Sequence record: MW248466.1 | Strand: one strand, 5' to 3' | DNA length: 64,000 bases | Shown: piece after piece, positions 5,675-53,641 of the stretch | How the letters are laid out: each line of letters starts with the position of its first letter | Numbering within the stretch: the first letter of the stretch is position 1 | Translations under genes and position numbers: made by a program | Notes under the pieces: model-generated | Databases searched by the model: none | What the model saw: only the letters and a program-made list of their open reading frames with translations | Told to the model about the DNA's origin: nothing

Positions 5675-8600
5675 ATGGCAGACTTTATGTATCTCCATCC
5701 TTCTGTACAAACACAAATCAACTCTTATCAAAATAATTACCCTACAGCTGAAGGTCCTGTAACATTATTTGCTGCAGACACTTTTGAAAAAGGTAAAGAT
5801 GGAGTTATTGATTTTGTTGGTACTGAAGAAGAATTTATTTTTAAATATGGTGAACCAAACTATACGAAATACGGTCAAGCCGCTTATAACGTCATGAACT
5901 GGTTACGTTCTGGTGGACAAGCTTATGTATTACGTGTATTACCTAAAAATGCAACTTACTCTCATGCTATATTAAACGTACAAAGTAGAGTACAAAAAGA
6001 TGGTAAAAAAGTTTTAACAGATGCAAATGAATTAGTTAAAATTGATGACGTTAAAATTCGTCCAACAATCGCATTTGTTAAGAAAAATAATAGAAATATC
6101 GAAGAATTAGTTAACGAAATCACTTTAGATCGTGGTAATGAACAAACAGTAGACGGTTATAATAATAACTTCTTACTTTTAGCTTATCCAAATGGTCGTG
6201 GTGAATCTTATAATGATTTAGGTATTCGTTTAACTTTAAATACTTCATATGACACTAGTGGTCGTACTGAACGTGTTTATAACTTAGAAGTACTTGAATT
6301 TGATGAATTCAGTAACGTTAATGTAATTGATGGACCATTCTTAGTTACATTTGATCCAGATTCAATTTCAGATACTGGTGAATCAATGTTCATTGAGGAA
6401 GTTGTTAATCGTTATTCTAAATACGTTAATATCAAATTTAATTTAGAAAACTTCCAAAATTTAGCTAAAGAAATTAACCCTAATGTACATCCTGCAAGTA
6501 TTGATGTTATCTCTGGTAAATCTAAAGTTAATATTGATGGAACTCCTGAAACTTTCTATTCAGAAAAAACTAAACAATCTGAAGATATTCATATCGCTTT
6601 ACACCGTTACAATAATAAAGGTGTACCAGTAACTATTAGTAGTAAACCTGTATTGAATAAGCCTGATTTTAACGATCCAGTTGAAAATGCATTAATCTCA
6701 TTAGATAATGGTATGCGTGAAAAAACTTTCGTTACAGATTCAGATCGTCTTTCTTACATGAGAGATCAATACAAAACTTTACGTTCTGATAGCTTTACAG
6801 AATTTAAATCATTATTAAATAAAATTATTGTGCCGGCTAATGGTTTATTTGAAGATGATGCAGGTGACTTGCCTAAAACTATTAAAGAAAATTTAGTTTC
6901 TGCAAAATTAACTCAAGAAGATGTAACTGCAGATATCAGTGATGAAGAAGCAGTTGAAGAAGAATTAGCTGGAAAATTCAAACCTTCTGAAATTAATTTT
7001 GGTGGTACACCTGCTGGAGCGGCTGAACGTTTAGTTCAAGATTATAACACTTATTTTGAAGATTCAAATGAAGAAAATCTTTCTGCAGTACTTTCAGGTA
7101 CAGAAGAAATTGGTTCTTTATTATTAAATGAATTTTTAGATAATGGTAATAGACTTAATGCTGCTTACGAATTAGTATATAAATCTAATTCAGGTATTTC
7201 TTCAAATCCTAAATATCAAGCTGATGTTAAAGAATTACGTGACGTATTGTCTCAAAAAGACCAAATCCGTATCTTTGGTATTCAACATAAATCTAATATC
7301 TTAGATATTACAAATGATATTGCTGAATTACGTATTGGTATGAAATCAGTTACTAATTTAGAAGGTATGTCTAAAGTATTAAATGATACTGAAACAGAAT
7401 TACGTTATGTAATTGATAACTTAATGCCAGCAGTTCGTGAAGGACTTCCTGAAGAAGCAGTTAACTTTATTAATACTGTTCCTGATGGTGACGATGAAGA
7501 CACAGAACGTGACTTAGTTTCTCCAGAAGCTATGTTAAACTCATTAGCTGACAAACAAATGTTAGTTGACGATATTAGCTTAGGATTAATGGAAGATAAT
7601 GCGGCTAACCGTGAAGAAGTATTTGTAGCTTGTAATGAAATAGCTAACCAATTAGTTGATTTAATTAACAGAGCTGTTTCAGTAGCTTCTGTATACAAAG
7701 TTGCTCGTGCAGTACGTATTGCAGCTAATACAATCTATTATGATATTTCTATCTTCCGTAAAAATATTGATGAAATGATTCAAACTCGTTCTAACTACAC
7801 AGAAAGAGATATTACATTGAATGCTCATCAAAATATTGAATTAGCTGTTGCTAACTTGAATAAAGCTAACTCTAAATACTTTAATACAAACCTTATTGAT
7901 GTATCTAGTCCAGTTAAATTCTTATTCGGTTCTGATGGCGACTTCTCATATGCTGAAGATATTTCATATAAAGATCGTAAAAATGCTGTTAACCGTGAAT
8001 TAATTAAAGCTTATAAAGGTTTAATTGATGAAGAAATTACTAACACTAAAGCTTTCCCATTTGATGTTGTTCTTGATGCTCGTTATTCTAACGAAGTTAA
8101 GTTCGCTATCTCTGAGTTAGCTAAAAGTGTTCGTAAAGACTTTGTATTCTTAGCTGATACTGTTACTGATCGTTACCCAGTTAGTCCTGAAGATGCAATT
8201 AGATGGAGAAAAGAAGAATTTGCAGTTTCTTCTGAGTATACAGCTATTTACTCTCAAGATTTAACTTACTATGATGAGTACACTGGTAGAGACATTCGTT
8301 TCACACCAACTTATCGTTTAGCTTCAATGATTCCTTATCAAGCTGTTAACTCTGGTTTACACTTCCCAATTGCAGGACCTAGACGTGGATTAGTTGAAGG
8401 ACATAAAGCTTTATCTTGGGCTCCTAATGAACCTTATAAAGAAAAACTTTATACTTCTAAAATTAACTACATTGAAAAAGATATTGATAGAACTAAATTT
8501 GGTGCACAAATGACTTCTATTAAATCTGATGGTCCTTTATCTAACTTGAACAACATCTTTACATTAAATCAAATTAAACGTGATGCAGAAACTCTTGTTT

Positions 8601-8827
8601 CTGATTACCAATTTGAATTAAATGATGATGAAACTCGTTCAATTATGGGTACAGAGTTGAATTCTTATCTTACTCGTTATGTATCTAACCGTAGCTGTGA
8701 AACTATTCAAGCTGAAGTTAGTGCAGATGAATATGATAAATCTCAACGTATTGTACGTGTTAAAATTTCTGTTAAATTCAACAATGTTATTGAACGTATC
8801 TTCATTGACATTAATGTTGAAAAATAA
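5675..8827 (+). CDS. contractile tail sheath protein (large, 1050 aa)
   Basis: N-terminal EEFIFKYGEP...GGQAYVLRV and C-terminal IAGPRRG...LVSDYQFELND...VRVKISVKF sheath domains; followed by tube gene. Confidence 0.85.
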   Translation: MADFMYLHPSVQTQINSYQNNYPTAEGPVTLFAADTFEKGKDGVIDFVGTEEEFIFKYGEPNYTKYGQAAYNVMNWLRSGGQAYVLRVLPKNATYSHAILNVQSRVQKDGKKVLTDANELVKIDDVKIRPTIAFVKKNNRNIEELVNEITLDRGNEQTVDGYNNNFLLLAYPNGRGESYNDLGIRLTLNTSYDTSGRTERVYNLEVLEFDEFSNVNVIDGPFLVTFDPDSISDTGESMFIEEVVNRYSKYVNIKFNLENFQNLAKEINPNVHPASIDVISGKSKVNIDGTPETFYSEKTKQSEDIHIALHRYNNKGVPVTISSKPVLNKPDFNDPVENALISLDNGMREKTFVTDSDRLSYMRDQYKTLRSDSFTEFKSLLNKIIVPANGLFEDDAGDLPKTIKENLVSAKLTQEDVTADISDEEAVEEELAGKFKPSEINFGGTPAGAAERLVQDYNTYFEDSNEENLSAVLSGTEEIGSLLLNEFLDNGNRLNAAYELVYKSNSGISSNPKYQADVKELRDVLSQKDQIRIFGIQHKSNILDITNDIAELRIGMKSVTNLEGMSKVLNDTETELRYVIDNLMPAVREGLPEEAVNFINTVPDGDDEDTERDLVSPEAMLNSLADKQMLVDDISLGLMEDNAANREEVFVACNEIANQLVDLINRAVSVASVYKVARAVRIAANTIYYDISIFRKNIDEMIQTRSNYTERDITLNAHQNIELAVANLNKANSKYFNTNLIDVSSPVKFLFGSDGDFSYAEDISYKDRKNAVNRELIKAYKGLIDEEITNTKAFPFDVVLDARYSNEVKFAISELAKSVRKDFVFLADTVTDRYPVSPEDAIRWRKEEFAVSSEYTAIYSQDLTYYDEYTGRDIRFTPTYRLASMIPYQAVNSGLHFPIAGPRRGLVEGHKALSWAPNEPYKEKLYTSKINYIEKDIDRTKFGAQMTSIKSDGPLSNLNNIFTLNQIKRDAETLVSDYQFELNDDETRSIMGTELNSYLTRYVSNRSCETIQAEVSADEYDKSQRIVRVKISVKFNNVIERIFIDINVEK

Positions 8828-8835
8828 TTAAATTT

Positions 8836-8873
8836 ATAGGATACGGCTTAATATAAAGTCGTATCCTATTTTA
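8836..8873 (+). terminator. hairpin between sheath and tube genes
   Basis: ATAGGATACGGCTT-aatata-AAGTCGTATCCTAT followed by TTT. Confidence 0.6.
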
Positions 8874-8981
8874 TTATATAAATAAAAGATCTTATATTAA
8901 ATTATGCTTATGGAGACAATATATAAACTTCTATAATATACATTTATGTAAATAAGATTAATGAAAAGGAGAAAATAATAT

Positions 8982-9788
8982 ATGATTTTACCAAGTAAAA
9001 ATCAGCGTGTGTTTGATAGTAACATCGCTAAGAATAAATGGTTCTATAATGGACATATGAACTTGCAAACTCTTGAATTTGATCCATTTGTAACTGGTTA
9101 TTCATTCATAGTATGGACTAAAGTTCCTTCTTGGGTTGAAAAGCAATTCCCTGGATTTAAATCTATGACTCAAAAGAACTTTAAATCATTCCAAGGTTTA
9201 GAAAACATTGAAATGACTACAAATGATTATATGCATACATTTAACGGTAATAACTATCGTACAGCTGCTAGTATTACAAAAGGAAACACTGGTTTCCAAA
9301 TGACTCACCAAGAATTCTCTGGTAGTCCAATTAAGAATATGTATCAATATTGGGTATCTGGTATCCGTGATCCTCGTACTGGTATTGCAACTTATCCTAA
9401 AATTCATAATTTAGAATATGCTGCTAAAAACCATACAGGTGAATTATTATACATTCAAACTCGTCCAGATGCTAATAATACATCTAAAAATAATATTGAA
9501 TTCGCTGCTTACTACACTGCAGTAATGCCTACTCGTATTTCTCTTGATCACCATAACTACACTATGGAAACTCATGAAGAAGCACAAATTGAGCAAGACT
9601 TTGCAGGTAATATGGAAATTTCAGCTCGTGTTAATGATTTCGCTAAATCTAAACTTAATGAAATTTACAGCTTTACTGAACAAGGTATGTTTGATCCATC
9701 TGCACCTAAAACTGCTGGTGACAACTTATCTGATTTCGACTATAATAAAGGTGGAATCACTGGTTCAGGTAACGGAGATCTTAAATAA
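8982..9788 (+). CDS. tail tube protein
   Basis: Directly after sheath; beta-rich; EFSGSPIKNMYQYWVSGIRDP resembles T4 gp19-like tube fold. Confidence 0.7.
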   Translation: MILPSKNQRVFDSNIAKNKWFYNGHMNLQTLEFDPFVTGYSFIVWTKVPSWVEKQFPGFKSMTQKNFKSFQGLENIEMTTNDYMHTFNGNNYRTAASITKGNTGFQMTHQEFSGSPIKNMYQYWVSGIRDPRTGIATYPKIHNLEYAAKNHTGELLYIQTRPDANNTSKNNIEFAAYYTAVMPTRISLDHHNYTMETHEEAQIEQDFAGNMEISARVNDFAKSKLNEIYSFTEQGMFDPSAPKTAGDNLSDFDYNKGGITGSGNGDLK

Positions 9789-13629: not shown

Positions 13630-16600
13630 TTATTTACCTGAAAATACTGGTATAGCAGATCTCACGTCAATATTGAATTGATCTCCATAAGCTCTATTAA
13701 TAGCTTCTTGAAGATCAGAATCTCCTTGTGAAGGTCCATTATTATTACCAGGGTTGATAATAATAGTATCTCCATTTCCATTATTGTCACCTGTACCAGG
13801 ATTATATGGATCATTAGGATTAACAATGACATTTCCATTATTTCCGTTATTACCATTGTTTCCATTTTGTCCGTTATTACTATTATTGCCATTTTGTCCG
13901 TTATTACCGTTGCTACCATTATTTCCATTTGCACCATTGATAATATCTGGATTATTTTGTAAATTATCTTTAATGATTTTATCAATTTCTTTATTAATTT
14001 CTTTGATAATTACATTACCTTTAGAATCAACTAAGTCACCTTTATTATTGATAGTTGTGTTATTAAAGATATTGTCACCTTTATTAATAGTAGTGTTATT
14101 ACCTTTAAATGACATTTTTCTAAGTTGATCTAACATCTTAGCTGTATTCTTATCAATATTACTTGTATGCTTAGTAATTTCATCTAAATCCATACGTTTT
14201 TGCTTATCAACTTTCATAGGTCCATTTTTGTAAGATACTGTAGAGTTATTATAATTATTAGTAATATTATAAATATTTCTTACAGTATTATTATCACCTT
14301 GAATTGTTTGATGAGTAGTAGAATTGTTGGTTGTAGTTCCCGGTGAAGTATAGTTATTATTAACTATGGTAGAATTAGTATTCCCCCCATTATTAATTAC
14401 AGTACTTCCGCCAGAAGAACTTCCTGATCCTTGTTGTTGAGATTGACCTGGCATTGATGAAGATGATCCATCTTGACCAGTTGCACCAGATTGACCATCA
14501 GAACCACTAGATCCTGATGAACCAGAGTCTCCTGATTCACCATCTTCTCCATCAGATCCTGATGAACCTGATTCAGATTTCTTCTTACCAGCTTCAGATT
14601 TAAGCTTTTCTTGTTGTTCTTGATCTATTTTTTTGGCTTCTTCGTAATCAATACCATATATTTGAGCGTAACGTTTCATTAAACGATCATTTAATGCTTC
14701 TTGTTCTTCTTCATCCATACGGTTATCGTCACGTCCAGTAATGGATCCGTACCAAGTACCATTTTTGAAACTATATTCTGAAGCTCCTGGTGAACCTCCT
14801 GATTCTGAACCTTCATCACTTGAGCTTCCGCTATCAGAACCTCCTTCACCATATCTCATATATCCATCAATTCCCCATTTAGGGTTTTTATATTTATTAG
14901 CGCTGTTAATAACAACACCATCAACGCCATTAGCTTCTACTTGTTTACCTCCACCAATGTACATTGTAACGTGTTCTATATTATCACATAAAATAATGTC
15001 ACCTGGTTTAAGGTCTTTGGGACTTTTAGCTTTAATTTTTTCAAAAGGCGTATCTCCATTCCAGAATGAATGAGTAGTGGCGTTTTTATCCATATCTAAA
15101 CCAGCTTTTACATAAGCTCTAGCTATCAAACTAGAACAGTCAAAAGAATTAGCTCCTTGTCTGTTAGGTTGTGAATATTTTGCACCAACCTGTTTCTTAG
15201 CCCATGCAACAGCTTTATCAATTTTGGCTTTTTGACTTCCGCCACCGCCACCGCCTCTTTGTATAGGTGGATTGCCTTTAATTATTCCTGTTCTACGTGA
15301 GCTTTTGTTTTTTCCTGATGTAGATGAAACCATGTTAGAAAATTTACTAATATCATTTGTATCAGCTATAACTGAACCGGCTCCACCTCCACCAGCTCCT
15401 CCACCTTTTTTCTTAGTAGATTTTTTACCAGAACCACTGAATTGTTTGATAAAAGCATTACCAGAAGAAATACGTGACCCTAAAGCAGGAACACCAGCTC
15501 TTTCATATTTACTTACCCAAGAAGCAGCTGCTTGTTCTACTGTTTTAGTAGTTTTAAGGTGAGATAAGGCAGCACTTTCTGATCCACTTAATTCTTTCCA
15601 TAAATAATCTAATTGTAAGTCTAAATCAGACCATTTTTTACCTTTTTCTTTAGCATATTTCATTAAACCTTGTCTACGAGTATTATCCCATTGAGCAATA
15701 CCAATACCATAACCAGAAATAGCACTATTAGCTTTTGCTTCATCAAATTTGGCATCTCCTTGAACACGATCAGCTTTCATTCCAGATTCATGTGCAAAGT
15801 TACCTAAAACACCAGCAGTTTGTTCATCAGAAAGTCCTTTATCTTTAAGGAAATTCCAAATTTTCTCTGCACCTTCACCTTCAATTCCGGCTGCATCACT
15901 TCCTGAAGATGATGCTGAACTTGATGAAGATGATCCAGAGCCAGCCATAAAACCAGCCATGATATCATTCATCATTCCTCCGAGCTTGTCAAACCAGTCT
16001 CCAATAGTGTTAACTACTTCTCCACCTGGTTCATTTATATCTAATTTAGATTTTTTCTTTTTCTTCTTACTTAGTAGAGAATAAAAAGGAGACATACGCA
16101 TCATAGTTTCTGCTAATTTCTTAGGAGCCTTTTTAAGTTTACTCATAAGATTTTTAGGCATTAATTTATTCATTTGATGACCAATTCTACCCATTACTGA
16201 TAATGGTGAATTTTTCATAGCTCCGTCTACATCTTTTTTAATGTCGTCTCTAGTTTTTCCTGCTGATTCTTCTACTTGTTTCTTAGCATCTTTGTTAGCT
16301 TTATCTGACATACCTTGCATTTCTGCTATTTCTTTTTTAGCTCTATCAGATGCTTCACTTTCAATACCTTCTTGATATGAACCTAATTCTTCTTTACTAG
16401 CTTCAGTCATTTCTTTACTCATATTTCCCATTTCTTCTTCATGACTAGAGAATTTATCTTTTAACCATCCCCAACCAGATTTAATTAATCCAGTTCCTCC
16501 TTGAAGAAGCATAGAAGTCATACCAGTTAAATTACTTAAACCTTTACCGGCTAATGCTAAAGGAGCCATCATTAACATGGAAGCTCCACCAACAACTTTC

Positions 16601-19512
16601 TTAATTAATCCACCAAAGCCGCTTGATTTTTCTTCCATAGCCATATCAGTTTGATCTCCAAAACTTTTAGCCATACCAGTAGTTTTCTGAACCATATTCA
16701 TACCTAAACCAAATGCTGGTTTTACAATTGATTTATATAATCCCACACCAGCCAATCCTAATAAAGGAGTAGAAGCTAATAATGGATTATCTTTGATAAA
16801 TCCTCCTATAATTGAAGATTTATCTGTAGAACCATTCATTTTAGTATCAACTGAAGGATCAACTGCAAAGTTTTCTCCACCAGGTTGAGTTGAATCTAAT
16901 TTTTCTTGTTCCTTTTTAGTTTTAGAAGGATGATCATTGAATCCAATAATACTACCTAATGTTTTAATTGGATGTTTTAATGAGTCTATAGGATTAGTTA
17001 TTGTTCTAATAATATCTGGACCAGCTAATGCCAATGATGCAATCTGTCCAATTCCAGGGATAGCATTTACTCCAACACGAGCACCTACTTTAGCTCCTGC
17101 TTTAAGTAATCCTTTACCTACAGCTTTTTTAGCACCTTTTCCAGCAGCCATTTTAGCAGCTCTAGCTTTAAGTTTTCCTTTAAGTTTACTACCTGCACCG
17201 GCCATTAAGGCACCGCCAGCAGCAAATTTACCAGTTAAAGAACCACCTGCACTAGTTATTTTACTACCTAATTTAGTATTAGATAATTTCCCTATTTTTT
17301 CTTTAGCAAAGTCTTTACCTTTGTTTTTATATTTATCAAATTTTTCTTTGACATGTTTATTACTATCAATAAGATCTTGAGCATCTTCCATTCTATCTAC
17401 AAGATCTTTATCATCTGAATTGTCAGAAGGTTTTGCTTGTCCATTTTCTAAAGTTTGTTCATTAGGAATAATAGTAGATCTATTATCATCATCTTTAATA
17501 TTATCATTTCTTGTATTATCAGATTGTCTACTTTGATTTGGACTAGAAGATGTTGTAGAAGTATTTTTATTTAAAGTTTGTTCTCTAGGATCTATTTCTC
17601 TAGAAATATTATCATTAGGTTGATTTACATCACTAATAATACCACTTGAATTACTATCACTAGAATTTCCGCTATATCTTCTCTCAGGTATTTTATTATT
17701 TATTCTAGATACAATTTCTTTAATTTCACTTATATCTTTATTAACGATATTAAAGTTAATATTATCGTATAATGCATCTTTGTTAGTGCTAAGAATACCA
17801 CTTCTATTTTCATTATTTAATTTAGAAGTAATGTTTTTAGAAGTGCCTTTTCTTTCATTTTCATCATTAAGAGCATTTATAGAACTACTAGATAATTTTT
17901 TCTTAATATCTTTAGATTCTTTATTTAATTGCATTCTAGTTTTAGTTAAACTAGTTTTAGCTTCTTTATCATTAAATAATTTATCTAAAAGAATATTAAA
18001 TGGATCATTCGGATCATTTGATTTAACTTGATCAAGTTCATTACTGTTATTAATATTTTTAGAAATGATTTCTTTAATTTTAGATGTAGCTTTATTTTTA
18101 TTATTTTCATTACTAAAAAGATCAATACCTATTTCAGAAGCTATATTTTCAAATTCTTTAGTAAAACTAGATTCCTTAATAGTTTTACTAACTTTTTCTT
18201 CTATATCATCTTTAATTGACTTAGAAGTTTTAAATGAACCTGAATCATAGTCATAATGAATTTCTTGTCCATCTTCTGAAGTTAAACCAACTATTTTAGA
18301 TAAATAACCAGGTATAACTGTATTAAGTGTATTATGAGTTTCTACATCAAAAGCAACTTTTTGATGTCTATCTTTTCTGTTAGCAGTTGATATACCACCA
18401 GTTACACTATCAAATATTTTATCAATTAATTTACTTTTACCTGATTTAACATCTTCAAGAAGATCATCTCTTCTTTTATCTCTTTTTATTTGTTTATCTT
18501 TATCGTTTCCATCACTAAAAGGATTAAATTTTTTATTAGCAAATTTACCGACTGCTTTTTCTATGAAAGTATTTTCATTATTAAGAAAATCAAAAGCTTT
18601 ACCTTTAGCTACATCAACTAATCCTAAACTTTTAATTCCTTGTTTTTTAGAACCAATAACTTCTTTAAGCAATTCAGTTCCTTGTGTTTTAATAAAGTCT
18701 TTAGCTTTATCTTTAAATCCTTCTTCTTGAGATCCTTCCAATATATTTGATAAAGTTATATTAGATAGGAATAAATCTTCTAATGAATTACTATTTTTAA
18801 TTTCAGATATATTTTTAATTTTAGTATTCTGTCTAATAGCATTACTAGTTTGAATTAAACCATTTAAGTTCTGGAACATACTTTCTCTAATACTATCATT
18901 AGCTTCTCTCATTAAATTAAGATTATCAATCATAGAAGTAAATCCGGTAGTATTTATTTGAGAAAGATTAGACACAGAAGAAGTTAATAAAGCTGTAGAT
19001 TTAGCAGAAGAACCACCATCATTAATAACAGTTGTAGAAGATACTATTTTAGATTTATTATTATCTTCTTCATCAAAGTCATCAAATTCAAAATCTCCAT
19101 CTAAAGAATCATCCATTTCAGAGTCCATATCTGAAAAACTATCGTCAAAACCAAAATCTTCAAAATCACCACCGACATCCATACCCATGTTATTGAAGTC
19201 TTTTAATGATCCTTTATCTTGAATTGTTTCTCCAGTTTTAAAGGTATTTTTAGTAGATTCTAAAGCTTCTTTAGATAAATCTTTAGTAGATTCACTTATC
19301 TTTTGTAATTGTTTTTTCTTTTTATTCTTTAATTCTTTAACATCTTTTAATGGATTATTTTGATCCATAATGCGTTTCATGTCATTAGACTTCATGTTAT
19401 TTAAATTTTTATTAAATTCATTATCTATATATTTTCTAGAAGATTTAGAGAAGGAGTTATTTCTAAACTCCTTCTCTATCTTGCTAGTACTAAATTTATT
19501 ATCTTTAGCCAA
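13630..19512 (-). CDS. tape-measure-like tail protein A with phage lysozyme and NlpC/P60 domains
   Basis: AGVLGNFAHESGM...GIGIAQWD (phage lysozyme 2 type, ~15490-15870); FDCSSLIARAY...EHVTMYIGGG (NlpC/P60 Cys-His, ~14860-15230); G/A-rich helical middle; S/G/N low-complexity tail. Confidence 0.8.
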   Translation of the reverse strand: MAKDNKFSTSKIEKEFRNNSFSKSSRKYIDNEFNKNLNNMKSNDMKRIMDQNNPLKDVKELKNKKKKQLQKISESTKDLSKEALESTKNTFKTGETIQDKGSLKDFNNMGMDVGGDFEDFGFDDSFSDMDSEMDDSLDGDFEFDDFDEEDNNKSKIVSSTTVINDGGSSAKSTALLTSSVSNLSQINTTGFTSMIDNLNLMREANDSIRESMFQNLNGLIQTSNAIRQNTKIKNISEIKNSNSLEDLFLSNITLSNILEGSQEEGFKDKAKDFIKTQGTELLKEVIGSKKQGIKSLGLVDVAKGKAFDFLNNENTFIEKAVGKFANKKFNPFSDGNDKDKQIKRDKRRDDLLEDVKSGKSKLIDKIFDSVTGGISTANRKDRHQKVAFDVETHNTLNTVIPGYLSKIVGLTSEDGQEIHYDYDSGSFKTSKSIKDDIEEKVSKTIKESSFTKEFENIASEIGIDLFSNENNKNKATSKIKEIISKNINNSNELDQVKSNDPNDPFNILLDKLFNDKEAKTSLTKTRMQLNKESKDIKKKLSSSSINALNDENERKGTSKNITSKLNNENRSGILSTNKDALYDNINFNIVNKDISEIKEIVSRINNKIPERRYSGNSSDSNSSGIISDVNQPNDNISREIDPREQTLNKNTSTTSSSPNQSRQSDNTRNDNIKDDDNRSTIIPNEQTLENGQAKPSDNSDDKDLVDRMEDAQDLIDSNKHVKEKFDKYKNKGKDFAKEKIGKLSNTKLGSKITSAGGSLTGKFAAGGALMAGAGSKLKGKLKARAAKMAAGKGAKKAVGKGLLKAGAKVGARVGVNAIPGIGQIASLALAGPDIIRTITNPIDSLKHPIKTLGSIIGFNDHPSKTKKEQEKLDSTQPGGENFAVDPSVDTKMNGSTDKSSIIGGFIKDNPLLASTPLLGLAGVGLYKSIVKPAFGLGMNMVQKTTGMAKSFGDQTDMAMEEKSSGFGGLIKKVVGGASMLMMAPLALAGKGLSNLTGMTSMLLQGGTGLIKSGWGWLKDKFSSHEEEMGNMSKEMTEASKEELGSYQEGIESEASDRAKKEIAEMQGMSDKANKDAKKQVEESAGKTRDDIKKDVDGAMKNSPLSVMGRIGHQMNKLMPKNLMSKLKKAPKKLAETMMRMSPFYSLLSKKKKKKSKLDINEPGGEVVNTIGDWFDKLGGMMNDIMAGFMAGSGSSSSSSASSSGSDAAGIEGEGAEKIWNFLKDKGLSDEQTAGVLGNFAHESGMKADRVQGDAKFDEAKANSAISGYGIGIAQWDNTRRQGLMKYAKEKGKKWSDLDLQLDYLWKELSGSESAALSHLKTTKTVEQAAASWVSKYERAGVPALGSRISSGNAFIKQFSGSGKKSTKKKGGGAGGGGAGSVIADTNDISKFSNMVSSTSGKNKSSRRTGIIKGNPPIQRGGGGGGSQKAKIDKAVAWAKKQVGAKYSQPNRQGANSFDCSSLIARAYVKAGLDMDKNATTHSFWNGDTPFEKIKAKSPKDLKPGDIILCDNIEHVTMYIGGGKQVEANGVDGVVINSANKYKNPKWGIDGYMRYGEGGSDSGSSSDEGSESGGSPGASEYSFKNGTWYGSITGRDDNRMDEEEQEALNDRLMKRYAQIYGIDYEEAKKIDQEQQEKLKSEAGKKKSESGSSGSDGEDGESGDSGSSGSSGSDGQSGATGQDGSSSSMPGQSQQQGSGSSSGGSTVINNGGNTNSTIVNNNYTSPGTTTNNSTTHQTIQGDNNTVRNIYNITNNYNNSTVSYKNGPMKVDKQKRMDLDEITKHTSNIDKNTAKMLDQLRKMSFKGNNTTINKGDNIFNNTTINNKGDLVDSKGNVIIKEINKEIDKIIKDNLQNNPDIINGANGNNGSNGNNGQNGNNSNNGQNGNNGNNGNNGNVIVNPNDPYNPGTGDNNGNGDTIIINPGNNNGPSQGDSDLQEAINRAYGDQFNIDVRSAIPVFSGK
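14589..14790 (-). repeat. copy 1 of ~200-bp segment shared by the two tape-measure-like genes
   Basis: Encodes PGASEYSFKNGTWYGSITGRDDNRMDEEEQEALNDRLMKRYAQIYGIDYEEAKKIDQEQQEK. Confidence 0.9.
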
Positions 19513-19535: not shown

Positions 19536-22500
19536 CTATTTCAATTCTTCTAATAAACGGTCTAATTCTTTAGTAGATGCTAATGTATTTCTATCTATAT
19601 TAGCTAACATTCTTACTAAATCATCTGAATACCATAATTTTTCATAATCATAAGTATAACCAGAGTTACCATTTTCAATTTTAGAATTTTTATAATTGTT
19701 TACAATTTTATTATAATGGTTAGTTACTCGGTTTTTACCTTTTATAAATTCTTTATTCACATTTTCATTATTAATGACATTACTTTGTCCATTTTGATAG
19801 TTGTTATTAACTGTTTGAGTATTTTTACTACCTTGATTATTGACATTGTTATTACCTTTATTAATATTAGAGAAATCACTATTATTTAATGTTGGTAATT
19901 GGAATACCGGAGGATTTCCGATATTCTTATTATTAGTTATTTGAGAACTTGATTCTTGTGGTTTAGATGGCGATGCTGAAGAATCAGAACTATCTGAAGA
20001 TTCTTTATCTCCAGAATCTTCACTTCCAGATCCTGATGAACCTGATCCGGCTTCAGATTTTTTCTTTTCTTGTTGTTCTTGATCGATCTTTTTAGCTTCT
20101 TCATAGTCAATACCGTATATCTGAGCATAACGTTTCATTAATCTATCATTTAATTCTTCTTGCTCGTCTTCATCCATACGATTATCATCACGACCAGTTA
20201 TTGAACCGTACCAAGTACCATTTTTGAAACTATATTCTGAAGCTCCTGGACCTGATTCACTATTTCCTTCTTGCTCGTCTTCATCACTTTTAGAAGCAGA
20301 AGAACTAGATCCTCCTCCGCCAATAGTCTCTTTAATTGTACTTGCTAAAGCTTTCTTACCTTTACTATTCGGATGAACACCTAAACCATCATTTTCAATC
20401 ATATCAGAACTGGCTTTACTATTCCAGTCTATTACTTTTGAATCTGAACTTTCAATAGCTTTGTTAGTTGCTTCAATAATATCAGAAATATCAGATCCTT
20501 TTCTCTTTTCAGGATCTACATACGTATTAACAAAGTATACATCTGCTTTGTCATACATATCTTCTATTTCTTTAACATTACCTGTAGTTAATCCTCCATT
20601 AGTACCTAATTGTACTATAATTGCATTTTTATCTTTATTGTATTTCTTTTTGTTGGATTCTAATACATTTTTACCATTAGGCGAAGGACCTCCACTTGAA
20701 TAAGTTCTTGAAGGAACTGCATTAATTTGAATTTTACTAACTGATTTTCTTATTTCAGAAGCAGCTCCTGCACCTATGGAGTCACCTACCATAAATACTT
20801 TATTGTAGGATTTACCTCCACCGCCTCCACCAGTTACTGTTTTAGCTATTTTTCTAATGGCTTCAGGAGTATTACTGAATGGAAATCTATCTTTAACAAA
20901 ATTATCAACTCGTTTTTTAATCTTCTTAATATTGTATATATCTGAATTGTAAATCTTAGTTTTTTCTTTTTCTGCCTTTTCTTCAGTTTTCTTCTGATTA
21001 TTTTCTAATTTATTTAAAAGAGCTCTATCATTTCTTACTTCTTTAGCTCTTTGTCTTTTAGCTTCTTTGACTTCTTGTGATTTATAACCACCGTCTACCA
21101 TTTTTACAGTAGGATCAAATGCAGCTCCACCTTTTTTACCTTTTTTAGATTTTCCAGCTTTACTACCTTTGTCTTCATCACTACCGCCTTTAGAACCTTT
21201 TAAAGGAGCTTTAATCCAAGGTGATGGATCTACAGAGTTTTTCTCCATAGCCCAACCGCCTGGTTTACCTTTATTTATTTGGAAGTGAAGGTGACCTGAA
21301 CCAGCAGTATTAGCACCAGTGTTACCTGAGATTGCTATAACTTGTCCAATTTTAACTTTATCGCCCTTTTTAACTAATTGTTTAGATAAATGCATATACG
21401 TACTATAGATGTTACCAGGTGATTTAACTTGAACAACATTACCTCCACCCGGATCGGTGTCTGATCTAATAACTGTACCTTCTACCATACATTTAACTTT
21501 TTGACCTGGAAGCATACCTATATCAATACCATAGTGCTTTCCTCCGTTAAATGATAAACCAGAGTAGTTACCATATGGTTGCCAAATCGCAGCACTTGGT
21601 ATTTTTTTCATCCAAGCACCAACTGTACCATCTGGTATTTGATTAATAGAACCAGGTACAATTTTCTTAGTATTCATATCTACTTCGCCAGCTTCACCTG
21701 AAACTTCAGGTTCACCGTCTCCACCAGAATCGCCACCACTAGAATTTTTCATTTTAGACATTGCAACAACCATTTCTTCCATTTTAACTAAGAAACGACT
21801 GAACCAGTCTCCAATTTCACCTTTACCATATTTAGAGAAATCAATTCCACCCTTAGCTATCTGATACAAACTACCTAGAGGTGTACTCATGAACATATCT
21901 TTTTGAATATTTTCTTCAGCCTTCGGTCCTGATTTCATTTTATTATCGGTAACTGTTTTAAACATATCTCCGCCAACTTTAGCTAGTGGGAACATAGGAG
22001 ATGCTCTAAACATTAGTTTAGAAGTACTTAATATTAATCTACCTAGACCTGTTTCATCTTCAGTATGTTTTTCTTCTTTACTTTTAGCTTCATCCTCTAT
22101 TTTATCACCGGGATGCTCTCCAATTCCAAAGAAGCTACCTAATGTTTTAATTGGATGTTTTAATGATTCTATAGGATGTTTAATAGTCTTAATAATATCA
22201 GGAGCCCACAATGCTGCACCAATTACTGGTCCAACGAATGGTATGAATGGTAATGCTGTTTTCAATCCTGCTTTTAATGCAAATTTTCCTCCAGCTTTCG
22301 CTGCACCTTTACCAAATAATTTATTTTTAGCTTTACCTATAGCACCAAAAGCTTTTCCTCCAAGTTTCTTAGCTCCGCCAAATAAACCTTTACCGATAGA
22401 TTTAACTCTGTTAAAGCCATTAGAAGCAAATTTACTTAATCCCTTAGTAGCAGCTGAAGCATTCTTTTTATTAAATATTTTAGATATACCACTTTTAGCT

Positions 22501-25493
22501 ACGTTCCCTATAGTTTTACCAACACTTAATCCTTTTTTGACTAATCCTGCACCTTTACCGATAACCATTTTGCCTAAAGCTTTAACAGTAGGTATTTTAC
22601 CTTTAGCAAATTTCCCAATACCTTTAAATACGTTACCTATCTTTTTAGGAACACCTGTAATACCTTTAAATAATTTTCCTAATCCAAATTTTCCAGCTAT
22701 ATTTTTAATTCCGCCACCTATTTTACCTAACATTCCAGGCATACCAGTAAAGAATTTACCTATTCCACCCGGTAATAATTTAGATAATAATTTAGGTCCA
22801 AATTTAGCAGCTAAGAACCCTCCAGCACCTAGCATAGCAGCGTTACCTAAGAACCCTCCAGCAGATGACAAGAATCCTTTTTTACCAGTTTCTGGACCGT
22901 TCTTACCATTTATACCTTTCATTAATGATCCTAATACAGCTGCAGAAGTTCCAGCAAATAAAACTGGTCCCATTTTACTAAAATCAAGCATACCACTCAT
23001 CATCTTTTTAGTACCAATGGATTTCTCAGCTTCTCCGCCTTTTCCAAAGTTTATATTACCTCTAATAGACTCAGCAATTTCTTTCTTACTAGATCCAGTC
23101 ATTGTAGACATAACATTTTCTCCAAGTTTTCCAGTATCAGCAGTTGAAAGACCTTGTTTCATTCTTTCTAAAGCTCCAGCATCTTGAGAATCTTCCATAT
23201 CTTTTTTAATAGTTGGATCGTTACCAAAAGCAGTTTTAACTAAATCAATTATTGTACTCTTAGCTTTCTTTTCTTTTTCTTCTCTAGTTAAATCATCTAT
23301 AGTTTTACTTGGTTCTTTAGTGTAAGCATCTTTATTAGCTTCATTATTATTAATTGATAATTTATTTAAACCAGGAATATTCTTCATTAAATCCGTTAAT
23401 GGATTATTGTCTATAATACTAGATTGATTTATATTCTGGTAAGGATGTTCATCATCTTGAACTGGTTGAATATTTTCTTGAGATGAATCAACTCTATTAG
23501 ATGCAGAAGAAACCATATCTTTAATAGCACTTGTAGGATTTTCTTTGTATTCTTTAGCTTTACTAACTGCATTAGAAAGACTATTTAATTTATCCATTAC
23601 AGAAGCATGAGCTTCATTACTTCCATTATTTCCACTTAGAATAGGGAAACTTTTACCTTTATCTATGATATTATTGATTGTATTAACTTTATTATTAATA
23701 AATTCTTTATTATCATTAATATTACCACTACTGAAATTATTGTCTAATTTTCTTTCTATTTCTAAGAAAATATTTTTAATTTCTTCTAAATCACTATTTT
23801 CCCAGTTAATATTACCAAAATCTTTAATCTGATTAATATTATCATTATTATTAGATCTAGAATATGTTGAATTAGATTTATTTAAACCTTCAATTTCAGT
23901 AAATGCCATTATTCTTGAATTATCTTTTTTATCAAGTGTTTTTGAAACGGATTTTTTAATATTGAATAAATCAGTATTGAATTTAGCCGAGTCTTTTTCA
24001 AATACTTCAGATAATGATTCAGTATTAACATTTATATTTTTCTGATTGATTATTTCTTTAAGTTTAGAAGTCTTTTTAATAGGTTTGTCTATTTTAGTTA
24101 ATTCAGTTAAAACTTCTTTAGTTCTTTCTTCATCATTATCCAATTTAGATAATAGTTCTTTACCTAAATAAGTGTCTTTAAAGTTAAATAATGAGTCTGA
24201 TTTAATTTTATCTAAGTCTTTTTCCTTAGCAGAACCTCGACTTTCCCAAACACCTTTTCGGTAGTTATAAATACTACCTAATTCAGCATTATCTGCTAGT
24301 CCACCTGAACGTCCTTCTTTTTTAGCTATCAAATTACCTTGAAGCCTAGATAAGAAATCTGGTATAACTTTATTAATAGACGTATGAGATTCCATATCAA
24401 ATTCAACAGGAGTATCTTTTTTACGTTTATTTTTTAGAGAAATACCACCTTTACCATCGCCTAATAATTCTTCTTTAAATTGATCTAGTCTACCTGAAAG
24501 AGCGTTTCCTAAATTAGATATATACTTATTATCATTGCCAGTTAATCTTTCTAAACCTTTATTAAGTTTACTATCTTCATCAAGATTTCTATTAATAAGC
24601 ATAGACCCTATATTCTGTGGATCAAATCTTTTATTCAATCTATTAAATATATTTTTATTATCGCCTTCAGGATCATAACCACCAATATCACCGTATAGAA
24701 GTTTATTAAAAGCAATTTTAGCTCCTTGAGTTGCAGCAAATTCAATAGGATTCTTAGCTACACCCATTAACATTGATTTAAGTTGATCACCGGACATCAT
24801 ACCCATTAATAAATTTTCAGGATTAGTTTTCTCGTCCAAATATTTTAATAAACTAACATTTCCATTTAATATGGAATGTAATTTATTTTGTTTATTTCTT
24901 TTGGTATTTTCTTCCATTATCGTATTCTGGTATATACCATCTTGTATTGTACTTAAATTTGATAAAGCTGAATCTACGAGACTGTTAGTTGCTTGCATTG
25001 ATAAAGAATAATTATTCAGTGCAATATTTGTTCCAACAAATCCTCTTTGATTTATCTCAGCTAAATTATTCATTGCTACTAGAGGTGAATTTGTTATTCT
25101 AGATTTCTTTTTATCTGATAAACTAACAATTTCAGATTTAGTTCCATCAGGATTATCGATATATTCTGTTACTGATTTATATTCAGGTTTTTCATTAGAT
25201 AATTTTTCATTACTACTTGAAAAAAGATCATTTTCATTAGATTTATTTTTTAGTGTTTTTAATAAATCATTAGTAGAACCTTTAACTTCAGAAAATTTCT
25301 TTAATCTTCTTTCATCATTGTTGAATAATTTTAAACCTGAATCTCCCACTATAGCATCTAATGATGGATTAGATTTTATAAACGCATTAAAAAGAATACG
25401 ACCAGTATTTTTAGAAGCATTTTTAATGACAGTTGATTTATTATTATTTTCTAATTGTCTAATATTCTTTTTATTTCTATTATTTTTAGCCAA
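19536..25493 (-). CDS. tape-measure-like tail protein B with M23 peptidase and SGNH hydrolase domains
   Basis: HYGIDIG...GHLHFQI (M23 Zn ligands, ~21240-21580); VGDS...QLGTNG...DGLGVHP (SGNH, ~20320-20810); paralogous to 13630-19512. Confidence 0.8.
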   Translation of the reverse strand: MAKNNRNKKNIRQLENNNKSTVIKNASKNTGRILFNAFIKSNPSLDAIVGDSGLKLFNNDERRLKKFSEVKGSTNDLLKTLKNKSNENDLFSSSNEKLSNEKPEYKSVTEYIDNPDGTKSEIVSLSDKKKSRITNSPLVAMNNLAEINQRGFVGTNIALNNYSLSMQATNSLVDSALSNLSTIQDGIYQNTIMEENTKRNKQNKLHSILNGNVSLLKYLDEKTNPENLLMGMMSGDQLKSMLMGVAKNPIEFAATQGAKIAFNKLLYGDIGGYDPEGDNKNIFNRLNKRFDPQNIGSMLINRNLDEDSKLNKGLERLTGNDNKYISNLGNALSGRLDQFKEELLGDGKGGISLKNKRKKDTPVEFDMESHTSINKVIPDFLSRLQGNLIAKKEGRSGGLADNAELGSIYNYRKGVWESRGSAKEKDLDKIKSDSLFNFKDTYLGKELLSKLDNDEERTKEVLTELTKIDKPIKKTSKLKEIINQKNINVNTESLSEVFEKDSAKFNTDLFNIKKSVSKTLDKKDNSRIMAFTEIEGLNKSNSTYSRSNNNDNINQIKDFGNINWENSDLEEIKNIFLEIERKLDNNFSSGNINDNKEFINNKVNTINNIIDKGKSFPILSGNNGSNEAHASVMDKLNSLSNAVSKAKEYKENPTSAIKDMVSSASNRVDSSQENIQPVQDDEHPYQNINQSSIIDNNPLTDLMKNIPGLNKLSINNNEANKDAYTKEPSKTIDDLTREEKEKKAKSTIIDLVKTAFGNDPTIKKDMEDSQDAGALERMKQGLSTADTGKLGENVMSTMTGSSKKEIAESIRGNINFGKGGEAEKSIGTKKMMSGMLDFSKMGPVLFAGTSAAVLGSLMKGINGKNGPETGKKGFLSSAGGFLGNAAMLGAGGFLAAKFGPKLLSKLLPGGIGKFFTGMPGMLGKIGGGIKNIAGKFGLGKLFKGITGVPKKIGNVFKGIGKFAKGKIPTVKALGKMVIGKGAGLVKKGLSVGKTIGNVAKSGISKIFNKKNASAATKGLSKFASNGFNRVKSIGKGLFGGAKKLGGKAFGAIGKAKNKLFGKGAAKAGGKFALKAGLKTALPFIPFVGPVIGAALWAPDIIKTIKHPIESLKHPIKTLGSFFGIGEHPGDKIEDEAKSKEEKHTEDETGLGRLILSTSKLMFRASPMFPLAKVGGDMFKTVTDNKMKSGPKAEENIQKDMFMSTPLGSLYQIAKGGIDFSKYGKGEIGDWFSRFLVKMEEMVVAMSKMKNSSGGDSGGDGEPEVSGEAGEVDMNTKKIVPGSINQIPDGTVGAWMKKIPSAAIWQPYGNYSGLSFNGGKHYGIDIGMLPGQKVKCMVEGTVIRSDTDPGGGNVVQVKSPGNIYSTYMHLSKQLVKKGDKVKIGQVIAISGNTGANTAGSGHLHFQINKGKPGGWAMEKNSVDPSPWIKAPLKGSKGGSDEDKGSKAGKSKKGKKGGAAFDPTVKMVDGGYKSQEVKEAKRQRAKEVRNDRALLNKLENNQKKTEEKAEKEKTKIYNSDIYNIKKIKKRVDNFVKDRFPFSNTPEAIRKIAKTVTGGGGGGKSYNKVFMVGDSIGAGAASEIRKSVSKIQINAVPSRTYSSGGPSPNGKNVLESNKKKYNKDKNAIIVQLGTNGGLTTGNVKEIEDMYDKADVYFVNTYVDPEKRKGSDISDIIEATNKAIESSDSKVIDWNSKASSDMIENDGLGVHPNSKGKKALASTIKETIGGGGSSSSASKSDEDEQEGNSESGPGASEYSFKNGTWYGSITGRDDNRMDEDEQEELNDRLMKRYAQIYGIDYEEAKKIDQEQQEKKKSEAGSGSSGSGSEDSGDKESSDSSDSSASPSKPQESSSQITNNKNIGNPPVFQLPTLNNSDFSNINKGNNNVNNQGSKNTQTVNNNYQNGQSNVINNENVNKEFIKGKNRVTNHYNKIVNNYKNSKIENGNSGYTYDYEKLWYSDDLVRMLANIDRNTLASTKELDRLLEELK
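20049..20249 (-). repeat. copy 2 of ~200-bp shared segment
   Basis: Encodes PGASEYSFKNGTWYGSITGRDDNRMDEDEQEELNDRLMKRYAQIYGIDYEEAKKIDQEQQEK. Confidence 0.9.
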
Positions 25494-31091: not shown

Positions 31092-33320
31092 TTAGTTATC
31101 ATATTTATCTTTGTATTCATAGTAGCTATCAAATTGAACTTCTAAACCTGAGAAAGCTGAAATGAATCCCATTCTACCTTCCATATTGATGTTTTCAATA
31201 TCTTTAAAATCAACATCTGGTTTACGATAATTGAAATTCTTATTTTTGTCTATAAATATTCTAATTCTATTTTCATTCTTAATAATCTTAATATACTTGT
31301 TATTAATATCTAATGGAACATGATTAGTTAAGAATAATTGTTTTTCTGATTCATCTTGGAATATTTCTTTAGGTTTCCCAAATACTTTATCAATTTCATA
31401 GAATCCAGTTTTCATGATACGGTCAGGATCTGTCATTACATCTTCATCATTCAAATCAAAGTAAGGAACATCCCAATTTTCTTGTTGAGAGGCTATCCAA
31501 AGCATATAACCTGAATTGAGTTGAGTGTTATAATCGAATACGATTCCCGCTCCACCAGTTTTATTTTTATTAATTACTTTAAATGTCATAATGTAATTTT
31601 TAGGGAATTTAAAGTTCTGGCTATAAACATAGTTCAATGCATCGTCATCAAATTTAGTTGTTCCTTCTATGAAGCTAATATAACCATAATTACCTAACGA
31701 TTGTTTAGATAAAGTTTTATTATAAAATCCGGTATAAGTTTGAGTTTCCACAGGAAACGTACCGTATGATCTTAATGCAACTATCATAGGATTAAAGTAT
31801 ATTCCTGATCTACTTTCATCATAGAAATAATCAGAACCATCTGGATTTTTAAGTGAATAATTGTATTCTAACTCAACTGTATACCAATCTTCTTTAGTCA
31901 CAATAAATGTATTATCAAATTCTTCATGACTAATTCCAGCTATTTCAAATTCATCTAAACTAACTTGAATTATTTCATTTGGATCAACGTCATCAACAAA
32001 ATTTGTTAATTTGACTTCTATTTCCATTTTCTTAATATTCTTCATATTGTACATCATATGTTTAAGATATGATTTTTGACCTTGAGTATTATAATTTTTA
32101 TTATTTGAAGGGAATATATTCTCTACTTTTTTGACTTTACCTGTATTTGATGTTAATGTGATATCATAAACTAATTTAGCTGTAGGATGATTATTATCTT
32201 TAAAGTTAGTTGAGTATCCCATATTAAACGCAAAGAAATCATAATTTAATAAACGTTTAATATTCATTCTAGGATTTTCATTTTCATCATCTAAAGTTAT
32301 CTTAACAAATGATGCAGAATTCTCATCTTCTTTATCAGATTTACTTAAAATATCTCCTTTAACTTCATATAAGCCAGTTTCTTGATTAAAGCTTACTGAA
32401 GATAATCTTGTTGATTCAAGATTAGAATGACTTACATCTTCATCATTAGCTTTTCTCAAGTCAAATATAGCTGTAGGTGCTTTAAATTGATAGTTCTCTG
32501 TAGCATTGATTATATTAAAACCTTTTCTGTCTGTTATTTTTAATTTAGATGTACCATTTTGTAAAGGTGCAAATAAATATTTCTCTCCTGGTTTAAAGTA
32601 CATTTTACCCTGAAATTTACGTGAAAAACCTTTTTTGTAAAATAAGTGTGGTAGAGTTTTCAAGCCATCATTATTAAGTGTAAATGGTTCTACTAAATCT
32701 TTATTATCTGTATCAGGTCTATAGAATTTATGCTCATGAACTTCATGTCTTTCTCTTAGATATCTATCAGAAGTGATATTCTCTAATTTATCTTCAAAAT
32801 CTGTTTCAGGTACAAATGGTATAATTCTAGGATCGTTATATCCCGGAGTAACTCTACCTGATTTTTCTTCAGTACTTTTCATCATGTGTTTAAAAATAGG
32901 TTTAGGGTTATTTTCAGTACCTAATATTTCATTTTCTTCATTAATAATCTTATTTAAATCATTAATGACAGTCTCTGGAAAAATTTTTACAGTATCTGTA
33001 TTAAATTGATCCGCTGTTTGCATATCATTAACAAAAAGTAAAAGATACCAAAGGTCAGTAGTACCATATAGTTCATTAGATAGATATTCAGGTCTATAGT
33101 GATATGATTTTGATAAGTCATAATCTATTAAATCTCTTTTAAGTACATTTTCATATTTTTTTAGTAATGGTAAACTAAAGACAGCTTGTTTTTCAAATAA
33201 ATACCATTCTGATATATTATTAAGTAATATTTTATTCGTCTTGGAGTATTCTATTTCATCAGACATTTCAGGTACATCATTTCTACCCATATTGTTATTT
33301 CCTACGTCACGAATAAGCAA
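31092..33320 (-). CDS. baseplate wedge (T4 gp53/LysM-like N-terminus) fused to long beta-rich extension
   Basis: YHYRPEYLSNELYGTTDLWYLLLFVN is the gp53-like motif; C-terminus (GAGIVFDY...YIKIIKNENRIRIFID...EGRMGFIS) resembles a lectin/DUF1080-type sandwich. Confidence 0.6.
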   Translation of the reverse strand: MLIRDVGNNNMGRNDVPEMSDEIEYSKTNKILLNNISEWYLFEKQAVFSLPLLKKYENVLKRDLIDYDLSKSYHYRPEYLSNELYGTTDLWYLLLFVNDMQTADQFNTDTVKIFPETVINDLNKIINEENEILGTENNPKPIFKHMMKSTEEKSGRVTPGYNDPRIIPFVPETDFEDKLENITSDRYLRERHEVHEHKFYRPDTDNKDLVEPFTLNNDGLKTLPHLFYKKGFSRKFQGKMYFKPGEKYLFAPLQNGTSKLKITDRKGFNIINATENYQFKAPTAIFDLRKANDEDVSHSNLESTRLSSVSFNQETGLYEVKGDILSKSDKEDENSASFVKITLDDENENPRMNIKRLLNYDFFAFNMGYSTNFKDNNHPTAKLVYDITLTSNTGKVKKVENIFPSNNKNYNTQGQKSYLKHMMYNMKNIKKMEIEVKLTNFVDDVDPNEIIQVSLDEFEIAGISHEEFDNTFIVTKEDWYTVELEYNYSLKNPDGSDYFYDESRSGIYFNPMIVALRSYGTFPVETQTYTGFYNKTLSKQSLGNYGYISFIEGTTKFDDDALNYVYSQNFKFPKNYIMTFKVINKNKTGGAGIVFDYNTQLNSGYMLWIASQQENWDVPYFDLNDEDVMTDPDRIMKTGFYEIDKVFGKPKEIFQDESEKQLFLTNHVPLDINNKYIKIIKNENRIRIFIDKNKNFNYRKPDVDFKDIENINMEGRMGFISAFSGLEVQFDSYYEYKDKYDN

Positions 33321-52408: not shown

Positions 52409-52423
52409 AAGGAGAAATTTTAA

Positions 52424-53125: not shown

Positions 53126-53135
53126 GGAAGTGTAA

Positions 53136-53627: not shown

Positions 53628-53641
53628 GGAGATAGATAAAT

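Follow-up and report, generated by a model that had tools for sequence, protein, structure and literature searches.

A putative peptidoglycan O-acetyl esterase domain of the OatA-C type in a tape-measure-like protein of Staphylococcus phage MarsHill

The stretch of DNA analysed here (the window, 64,000 nucleotides of sequence record MW248466.1) comes from Staphylococcus phage MarsHill, its positions being those of the record minus 62000; positions 13000-26500 are 100% identical to the record. MarsHill is a jumbo phage of 266.6 kb with a contractile tail, related to the Bacillus phages AR9 and PBS1. The subject of this work is the product of its gene gp087, annotated as a tape measure protein, which carries a peptidase of the M23 family and, further towards the C-terminus, a domain of the SGNH type resembling the C-terminal catalytic domain of OatA (OatA-C). 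In Staphylococcus aureus, resistance to lysozyme is due to the OatA-dependent O-acetylation of peptidoglycan. An earlier reading of the letters alone (the original prediction) had proposed that the phage domain acts in the opposite sense, as a de-O-acetylase. The gene and the elements of the domain are as follows.

19536..25493, minus strand: gp087 (CPT_MarsHill_087), 1985 amino acids (aa), annotated tape measure protein, bearing the M23 and SGNH cassette
20319..20816, minus strand: core of the OatA-C-like SGNH domain, aa 1560-1725 of gp087, delimited on the AlphaFold2 model
20778..20780, minus strand: block I nucleophile Ser1572 (GDS, within VGDSIG)
20766-20768, minus strand: Gly1576, four residues after the nucleophile (Ser+4)
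20709..20711, minus strand: block II Ser1595, followed by Arg1596
20598..20600, minus strand: block III oxyanion Asn1632 (LGTNGG)
20373..20390, minus strand: block V DGLGVH, from Asp1702 to His1707 (the latter at 20373-20375)

The core delimited on the AlphaFold2 model is essentially the 20320-20810 interval first proposed, and all the motifs on which that proposal was built (GDS, LGTNG, V-x-F-V-N-T, IDW and DGLGVHP) are found on the minus strand of the open reading frame 19536..25493, V-x-F-V-N-T in the form VYFVNT and IDW at Asp1689/Trp1690. Blocks I and III have the residues expected of an SGNH enzyme, namely the nucleophile Ser in GDS and the Asn of a GxN motif. Block II departs from the canonical pattern, Ser1595 standing where SGNH proteins have Gly, and block V contains a two-residue insertion with respect to the canonical DxxH.

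The likeness to OatA-C is confirmed and lies far beyond chance. When a cut-out comprising aa 1530-1745 of gp087 was compared with the PDB by phmmer, it matched 6WN9/6VJP, the C-terminal catalytic domain of S. aureus OatA (PMC9487903), with an E-value of 5.7e-10, and a profile built from four jumbo-phage domains retrieved OatA-C at 8.9e-15. The same cut-out was modelled with AlphaFold2, using an input alignment from which the rows of phages SA1 and LY01 were left out; the predicted local distance difference test (pLDDT) score exceeds 90 across residues 1560-1725, which form a compact core of 166 residues without any inserted domain. In the Foldseek search of the PDB, S. aureus OatA-C came first (E 2.3e-09, template modelling (TM) score 0.81), ranks 1-5 being occupied by the OatA-C domains of S. 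aureus and S. pneumoniae, followed later by the GDSL esterase Cj0610c of Campylobacter jejuni and by PatB of C. jejuni and Neisseria gonorrhoeae. The domain has the three-layer alpha/beta/alpha fold, with five parallel strands in its sheet; the top 29 matches are all SGNH/GDSL proteins, and the closest solved structures, besides the unassigned Cj0610c, are enzymes handling peptidoglycan O-acetyl groups. The prediction of an OatA-C-like SGNH domain on a protein of the tail module is thus borne out by the fold match, the nucleophile Ser, the oxyanion Asn and the His all being present.

The distribution of the block V insertion was followed in the wider family. When 1.84 billion representative proteins were scanned with HMMER, 195 matched at E-values up to 0.001, and the domain was extracted and aligned from 150 of them (the 150 representatives, to which the column counts refer). 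Once the phage family is set aside, the best matches are not OatA proteins but secreted proteins that measure 420-620 aa and carry an N-terminal SGNH domain; among the top 40, Pfam recognises the lysozyme-like PF18013 ('phage tail lysozyme') in 31, M23 in 10, CHAP in 7 and the acetyl-donor domain AT3 in only 2. The catalytic columns are well kept, with Ser as nucleophile in 146/150, the oxyanion Asn in 147/150, the block V His in 144/150 and the Trp of the IDW motif in 148/150. The two-residue insertion, in the form [D/N]GLGVHP, occurs in 71 of the 150; fusion to AT3 is seen in none of these 71, and fusion to PF18013, M23 or NlpC/CHAP-type domains in 55. The AT3-fused sequences, on the other hand, retain the canonical DxxH in 21 cases out of 21. 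Two further columns separate the groups: at Ser+4, Gly is found in 56/81 hydrolase-fused sequences and Asp in 8/21 AT3-fused versus 2/81 hydrolase-fused ones, and block II has Ser in 62/81 hydrolase-fused and Gly in 13/21 AT3-fused sequences. The hydrolase-fused subfamily, as defined in this analysis (it is not a curated family), includes MarsHill, which bears all its sequence marks, with M23 on the same polypeptide and PF18013 and NlpC/P60 on a paralogue. The DxxxxH spacing, which the original prediction had entered as a caveat, is real; since the insertion is conserved in the hydrolase-fused subfamily and never occurs in AT3-fused proteins, it is, on this alignment, the signature of a distinct hydrolase-associated subfamily rather than a defect.

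Among characterised proteins S. aureus OatA-C (6VJP/6WN9) is the best solved match, sharing with the phage domain a compact SGNH core of ~155 residues, the GDS, GxN and IDW-like motifs and the His. It differs in that identity is only 24% and in that the phage protein lacks AT3, carries Gly at Ser+4 and Ser in block II, and has two additional residues between Asp and His; hydrolysis would be expected in the phage protein instead of transfer. The SGNH domain of gp087 is not an OatA. Gly1576 stands at the position of the S. aureus OatA Asp which orders water and limits hydrolysis, and whose replacement raised hydrolysis ~3.8-fold (PMC9487903); moreover, OatA-C domains have weak esterase activity in the absence of an acceptor (PMC5697884). 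As regards block II, the OatA of S. pneumoniae has Ser there too (PMC9487903), and the backbone NH of Ser1595 could still serve the oxyanion hole.

These data bear directly on the alternative that the domain is an acetyltransferase of the OatA-C kind, which would transfer acetyl groups to glycan strands or from one strand to another. The top structural matches are indeed acetyltransferases, and SGNH transferases and esterases have a common acetyl-enzyme chemistry (PMC9487903). Nevertheless, the Pfam and NCBIfam scans of gp087 gave no match to AT3 (PF01757), the protein has neither an AT3 nor an MBOAT partner, outside the cell there is no donor of acetyl groups, the Asp that excludes water is missing and every AT3-fused relative has the other type of block V, all of which makes transfer highly improbable.

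The SGNH domain shares its polypeptide with a peptidase, and a second long gene downstream on the same strand encodes a paralogous scaffold with another pair of enzymes at the equivalent position.

21267..21539, minus strand: peptidase M23 domain of gp087, aa 1319-1409 (PF01551, 6.6e-23)
20817..21266, minus strand: low-complexity linker between M23 and SGNH, ~150 residues rich in Lys, Gly and Glu, with a Gly run at its end, seen in the translation
20049..20249, minus strand: 67-aa post-cassette segment of gp087, 96% identical to the segment at the same position of gp086
13630..19512, minus strand: gp086 (CPT_MarsHill_086, annotated 'tail lysin'), 1960 aa, paralogous scaffold with another cassette at the equivalent position
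15439..15870, minus strand: lysozyme-like domain of gp086, aa 1215-1358 (PF18013, 1.6e-35)
14893..15153, minus strand: NlpC/P60 domain of gp086, aa 1454-1540 (PF00877, 4.8e-11)
14590..14790, minus strand: gp086 copy of the 67-aa segment, from the comparison of the paralogues

The M23 motifs of gp087 are intact (HxxxD with His1320/Asp1324, His1368, and HxH with His1401/His1403). The SGNH domain had been described as lying right after this peptidase: M23 is indeed upstream, and the two domains are not directly adjoining but separated by the linker, whose part inside the model (residues 1-30 of the cut-out) has low pLDDT. The further statement that a lysozyme is carried by a paralogous protein holds as well, PF18013 being found in gp086, where it is related to the N-terminal domain of gp13 of phage phi29, matching the latter (PDB 3CSQ, 'Morphogenesis protein 1') at an E-value of 8.5e-05. 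Thus, the equivalent position of the scaffold is taken by M23 and SGNH in gp087, and by PF18013 and NlpC/P60 in gp086. Identity between both proteins is 25% in the N-terminal third, 44% in a central motif and 96% in the 67-aa segment following the cassette; in a somewhat wider stretch of DNA around this segment 88% of the columns are identical, and the differences, judged by eye, look mostly synonymous. The pattern suggests either that the two proteins share an interaction motif under strong constraint or that gene conversion has taken place. Near its C-terminus gp086 also contains a Gly-Asn-Asn triplet repeat (13834..13935, aa 1860-1893; Pfam collagen-repeat match at 1.2e-07), and its aa 1639-1717 give weak PHROG matches to collagen-like minor tail and tail fibre proteins.

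The protein gp13 of phi29 is one of the closest known systems, combining a virion lysozyme of the PF18013 type, matched by that of gp086, with an M23 peptidase for the Gram-positive wall. It is, however, a small tail-knob protein without esterase, whereas in MarsHill lysozyme and M23 are on separate paralogues and are accompanied by NlpC/P60 and SGNH. The secreted SGNH-PF18013 proteins of Saccharibacteria/Patescibacteria (some with M23, CHAP or NlpC in addition) and the membrane proteins with N-terminal SGNH in Gram-positive conjugative elements resemble the domain itself, to which they are 37-43% identical, with the [D/N]GLGVHP motif, the block II Ser and the Gly at Ser+4. They also share with the phage the PF18013, M23 and NlpC/CHAP partners and the association with machines moving DNA across a cell wall. 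These cellular or plasmid-borne relatives differ in being mostly of 420-620 aa with all the enzymes on one polypeptide, while the phage splits four enzymes over two paralogues of ~2000 aa; gp086 and gp087 combined have the four-domain repertoire of the single polypeptides. Since the nearest relatives are mostly fused to PF18013, the family which in MarsHill is found on the paralogue, they provide independent support for a partnership of esterase and glycosidase. No description of these relatives was found in the literature.

The genomic setting of the relatives also counts in favour of an esterase. SGNH-PF18013 genes were found near VirB4-type ATPases in secretion loci in 3/3 cases examined: in one, an SGNH-PF18013-CHAP gene, the locus includes a VirB4-type ATPase along with genes resembling TrbL, PrgI and TraC, and in two loci of Saccharibacteria the SGNH-PF18013 gene is two genes downstream of the VirB4-type ATPase. 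In the Saccharibacteria-type loci L007, L010 and L012, from metagenomes and assembled genomes, the SGNH-PF18013 gene is preceded by genes for a VirB4-type ATPase and for a ~1000-aa protein whose family matches are weak or absent; one of these proteins matched Peptidase_M74 weakly. A genome scan placed 12 relatives in metagenome-assembled genomes, 7 of them labelled Candidatus Saccharibacteria, 1 Saccharimonadales, 1 Patescibacteria group and 3 simply 'bacterium'.

The two closest non-phage matches, 1518 and 1662 aa long, both have an N-terminal SGNH domain, which in one of them (P0002) is followed by hydrophobic and long low-complexity, probably helical regions. The element in which one of the two lies also encodes an LPXTG surface protein, a MobL relaxase and a type IV coupling protein, a combination that marks a Gram-positive conjugative element. 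In a rough neighbour-joining tree the phage domains group with these two proteins in 31/40 bootstraps, the AT3-fused sequences forming the outgroup. Capture of a host oatA gene was considered as the origin of the phage domain and rejected, given the outgroup position of the AT3-fused sequences and the conjugative-element proteins as nearest clade in this rough tree. A tblastn search of the PLSDB plasmids gave no match, and a search for related loci with a broad domain alignment gave no conserved stretch.

The viral world was also surveyed. The scan of IMG/VR with the SGNH-PF18013 alignment retrieved no viral relative, and in the BFVD structure search the viral SGNH matches are at most 19% identical. 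Four unannotated records of 7-11 kb filed as 'Listeria phage' (OR848364.1, OR846926.1, OR848271.1 and OR846888.1) show 28% identity to the SGNH domain at E-values of about 3e-03; under their phage label these contigs may in fact carry bacterial genes of the OatA type. It is already known that SGNH domains occur on tail proteins of S. aureus phages and that lysin domains occur on tape-measure and tail-tip proteins. The Tal proteins of phi11 (Gp44) and 80alpha (gp59) are tail-tip proteins of S. aureus phages whose SGNH hydrolase domain has a putative action on the cell wall, but this domain belongs to another SGNH lineage, matching CE2 esterases and lipases, and is borne by a baseplate hub protein, not by a tape measure.

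As an active esterase or lipase, the domain might instead have a different substrate: O-acetylated capsular or surface polysaccharide, the D-alanine esters of teichoic acids, or membrane lipids encountered during the passage of the tape-measure protein through the envelope. Deacetylation of surface polysaccharides is common among SGNH domains of tail fibres and tailspikes, and the distant fold matches of the gp087 domain include many such viral SGNH proteins; furthermore, gp087 has hydrophobic Gly-rich segments and transmembrane domains predicted by the authors of the MarsHill description, so that it is expected to meet the membrane. The nearest solved structures are, nevertheless, mainly enzymes of peptidoglycan O-acetylation and not lipases, the fusion partners in the subfamily are peptidoglycan glycosidases and peptidases instead of depolymerases or receptor-binding domains, and the identity to other viral SGNH domains does not exceed 19%. 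We consider a different substrate improbable.

The comparison with sister phages shows a higher degree of complexity. The SGNH domain is found in all 10 jumbo staphylococcal phages of the phage collection, but the catalytic residues are kept in only five of them, MarsHill, Madawaska, S6, DC4 and PALS_2 (type A). In the other five (type B) the nucleophile motif reads GDE (Machias, AH12, PB50 and SA1) or GDD (LY01), and the His is replaced by Met or Thr in every case. The type B cassettes, which are 44-60% identical among themselves, retain block III and the Trp of IDW, its Asp being variable, and the model of the Machias domain keeps the SGNH fold, with a pLDDT of 85 and OatA-C as best match. 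The M23 motifs are intact in both types (MarsHill, PALS_2, Machias, SA1 and LY01). The identity profiles delimit the exchanged unit: aa 1276-1725 (M23, linker and SGNH, 20319..21666) behave as a cassette, 99-100% identical between MarsHill and PALS_2, above the rest of the protein, while between MarsHill and LY01 the cassette is 28-52% and the flanks 80-99% identical. The M23 domains of LY01 and Machias are 89% identical. In the tree type A is on a short branch and type B on a long one. Within the MarsHill group only 2 of 513 nucleotides differ, so few that the ratio of non-synonymous to synonymous substitution rates (dN/dS) is without power. Two alleles of the cassette therefore circulate, type A looking active and type B inactivated, to judge from their residues.

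The loss of both Ser and His in half of the phages shows that the phage group can do without catalysis, and keeps in play a non-catalytic role, in which the domain would bind glycan or O-acetyl-MurNAc (MurNAc, N-acetylmuramic acid) and position M23, or act as a scaffold element, the Ser and His of the MarsHill group being a functionless ancestral state. The maintenance of the type B domains without nucleophile and base, with block III, the IDW Trp and, in Machias, the predicted fold preserved, is what such a module would look like; in addition, the O-acetyl group of MurNAc aids the adsorption of other S. aureus phages, an oatA mutant halving that of phi11 (PMC4876445). A tape-measure protein, though, has no role in initial adsorption, because it is inside the tail tube before ejection. 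Moreover, type A matches every catalytic column of the active-looking cellular family at only ~40% identity, which argues for continued selection on the active site, and the short branch of type A and the long one of type B fit selection on catalysis in the former and relaxed selection in the latter. A purely non-catalytic module seems unlikely for MarsHill, although less so than a change of substrate. The outcome named beforehand as contrary to an esterase, a catalytically dead domain, is thus encountered in the five sister phages and not in MarsHill itself.

Apart from the type B domains, whose lost residues and preserved fold count against an enzymatic function, several other observations weigh against an esterase. 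In block V of MarsHill, His1707 is in place, but the Asp, at the fifth position before it, is displaced by the insertion; in the alignment this position is Asp in 124/150 and Asn in 16/150, the Asn cases being unfavourable to a canonical triad. SGNH enzymes without the block V Asp can, however, be active (PMC9487903). Pfam and NCBIfam, applied to the whole of gp087 and to the cut-out, gave only sub-threshold GDSL/DUF459 matches (GDSL E 0.0092, 16.6 bits versus a cut-off of 23.6), which is probably why the SGNH domain stayed unannotated; neither the MarsHill preprint nor the DC4 paper mentions it. The known peptidoglycan de-O-acetylase Ape1 of Neisseria (4K3U), which had been suggested for comparison along with OatA-C, shares the SGNH fold and performs the proposed removal of 6-O-acetyl groups, enabling glycan-cleaving enzymes, but as a structural match it is weak (rank 31, E 2.7e-03, TM about 0.4 relative to the query), and the phage domain falls outside the Ape1 family; Ape1 has, besides, an inserted carbohydrate-binding domain and a canonical triad (PMC9487903). 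Finally, in the virion proteome of DC4 obtained by liquid chromatography-mass spectrometry (15 proteins) neither the gp086 nor the gp087 orthologue was reported, and in that of SA1 (52 proteins) the rows of both paralogues are without peptide data; a low copy number could explain that the orthologues were not detected.

The de-O-acetylase proposal is thus partly supported: it gains from the absence of AT3, from the catalytic residues and from the relatives fused to PF18013, and loses from the five inactivated sister copies. On balance, and on the strength of residues, fold and family, we consider it about as likely as not, and likelier than any of the alternatives, that in MarsHill and its four closest relatives the SGNH domain works as a competent O-acetyl esterase, with the 6-O-acetyl-MurNAc of staphylococcal peptidoglycan as its substrate.

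The carrier of the domain has the features of a tape measure protein. The tail module in which gp087 lies, between the sheath/tube and the baseplate genes, comprises the following genes.

5675..8827: sheath gene
5675..9788: sheath and tube-like genes
31092..33290: baseplate wedge gene

Besides this position, gp087 has the length (1985 aa) and the Gly/Ala/Lys-rich hydrophobic region, visible in the translation, of a tape measure protein, and the annotation given by the MarsHill authors was based on helical content and predicted transmembrane segments. The measured tail length of MarsHill, about 233 nm, would fit the gp087 scaffold if, leaving aside its two globular domains, ~1700 residues are extended at 0.15 nm each. 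The protein would be a component of the virion.

From the domains, residues, fold, family distribution and gene context described, we infer an activity, a substrate and an order of events. The proteins gp087 and gp086 are paralogous and tape-measure-like, each with a two-enzyme wall cassette in its C-terminal third. On contraction of the sheath they would leave the tail tube and the C-terminal cassettes would reach the wall. There, Ser1572, with His1707 as base, would attack the 6-O-acetyl ester of MurNAc, while the side chain of Asn1632 and two backbone NH groups, those of Ser1572 and Ser1595, would make up the oxyanion hole; Asp1702 might support His1707 from a loop two residues longer, or the enzyme might work with a Ser-His dyad. 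As there is no donor domain and the water-ordering Asp is absent, the acetyl-enzyme would be resolved by water. The de-O-acetylated glycan would become cleavable by the phi29-gp13-like lysozyme of gp086, M23 and NlpC/P60 would cut the peptide cross-links, and the four activities together would breach the thick wall, resistant to lysozyme as it is, so that the tail tube can pass. A comparable division of labour exists in Gram-negative bacteria, where Ape1 licenses lytic transglycosylases.

Elsewhere in the window, some observations unrelated to the tail cassettes were made. About eighteen consecutive genes on the plus strand (51926..63099), encoding products of roughly 40-275 aa (most of them 160-275) and all annotated as hypothetical, may form an array of paralogues. 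Two genes are annotated as split: that of DNA polymerase I in two pieces (43061..45181), and that of the RNA polymerase beta-prime subunit in three (48055..51191), the latter with a homing endonuclease gene inside (49678..50658).

What is new with respect to the SGNH domains described so far is the OatA-C-like lineage, the tape-measure-like carrier, the uncharacterised subfamily shared with conjugative and Saccharibacteria loci, and the existence of active-looking and inactive alleles. A broader proposal, which we advance tentatively and hold to be possible rather than probable, is that the MarsHill domain could be the phage member of an unrecognised family of OatA-C-like de-O-acetylases dedicated to machines that pass DNA through the wall (tape measures, Gram-positive conjugative elements and the secretion systems of Saccharibacteria) and hard-wired to PF18013 lysozymes, type B being a derived pseudoenzyme that binds O-acetylated peptidoglycan and is swapped as a cassette. 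If the esterase activity is true, the removal of O-acetyl groups where the phage enters would account for the action of a virion lysozyme on the S. aureus wall, the domain would be the first esterase with this fold to be described for Gram-positive peptidoglycan, and a functional label would become available for the uncharacterised SGNH-lysozyme fusions of conjugative elements and Saccharibacteria. The presence of active and inactive alleles in otherwise similar phages offers, moreover, a natural comparison set.

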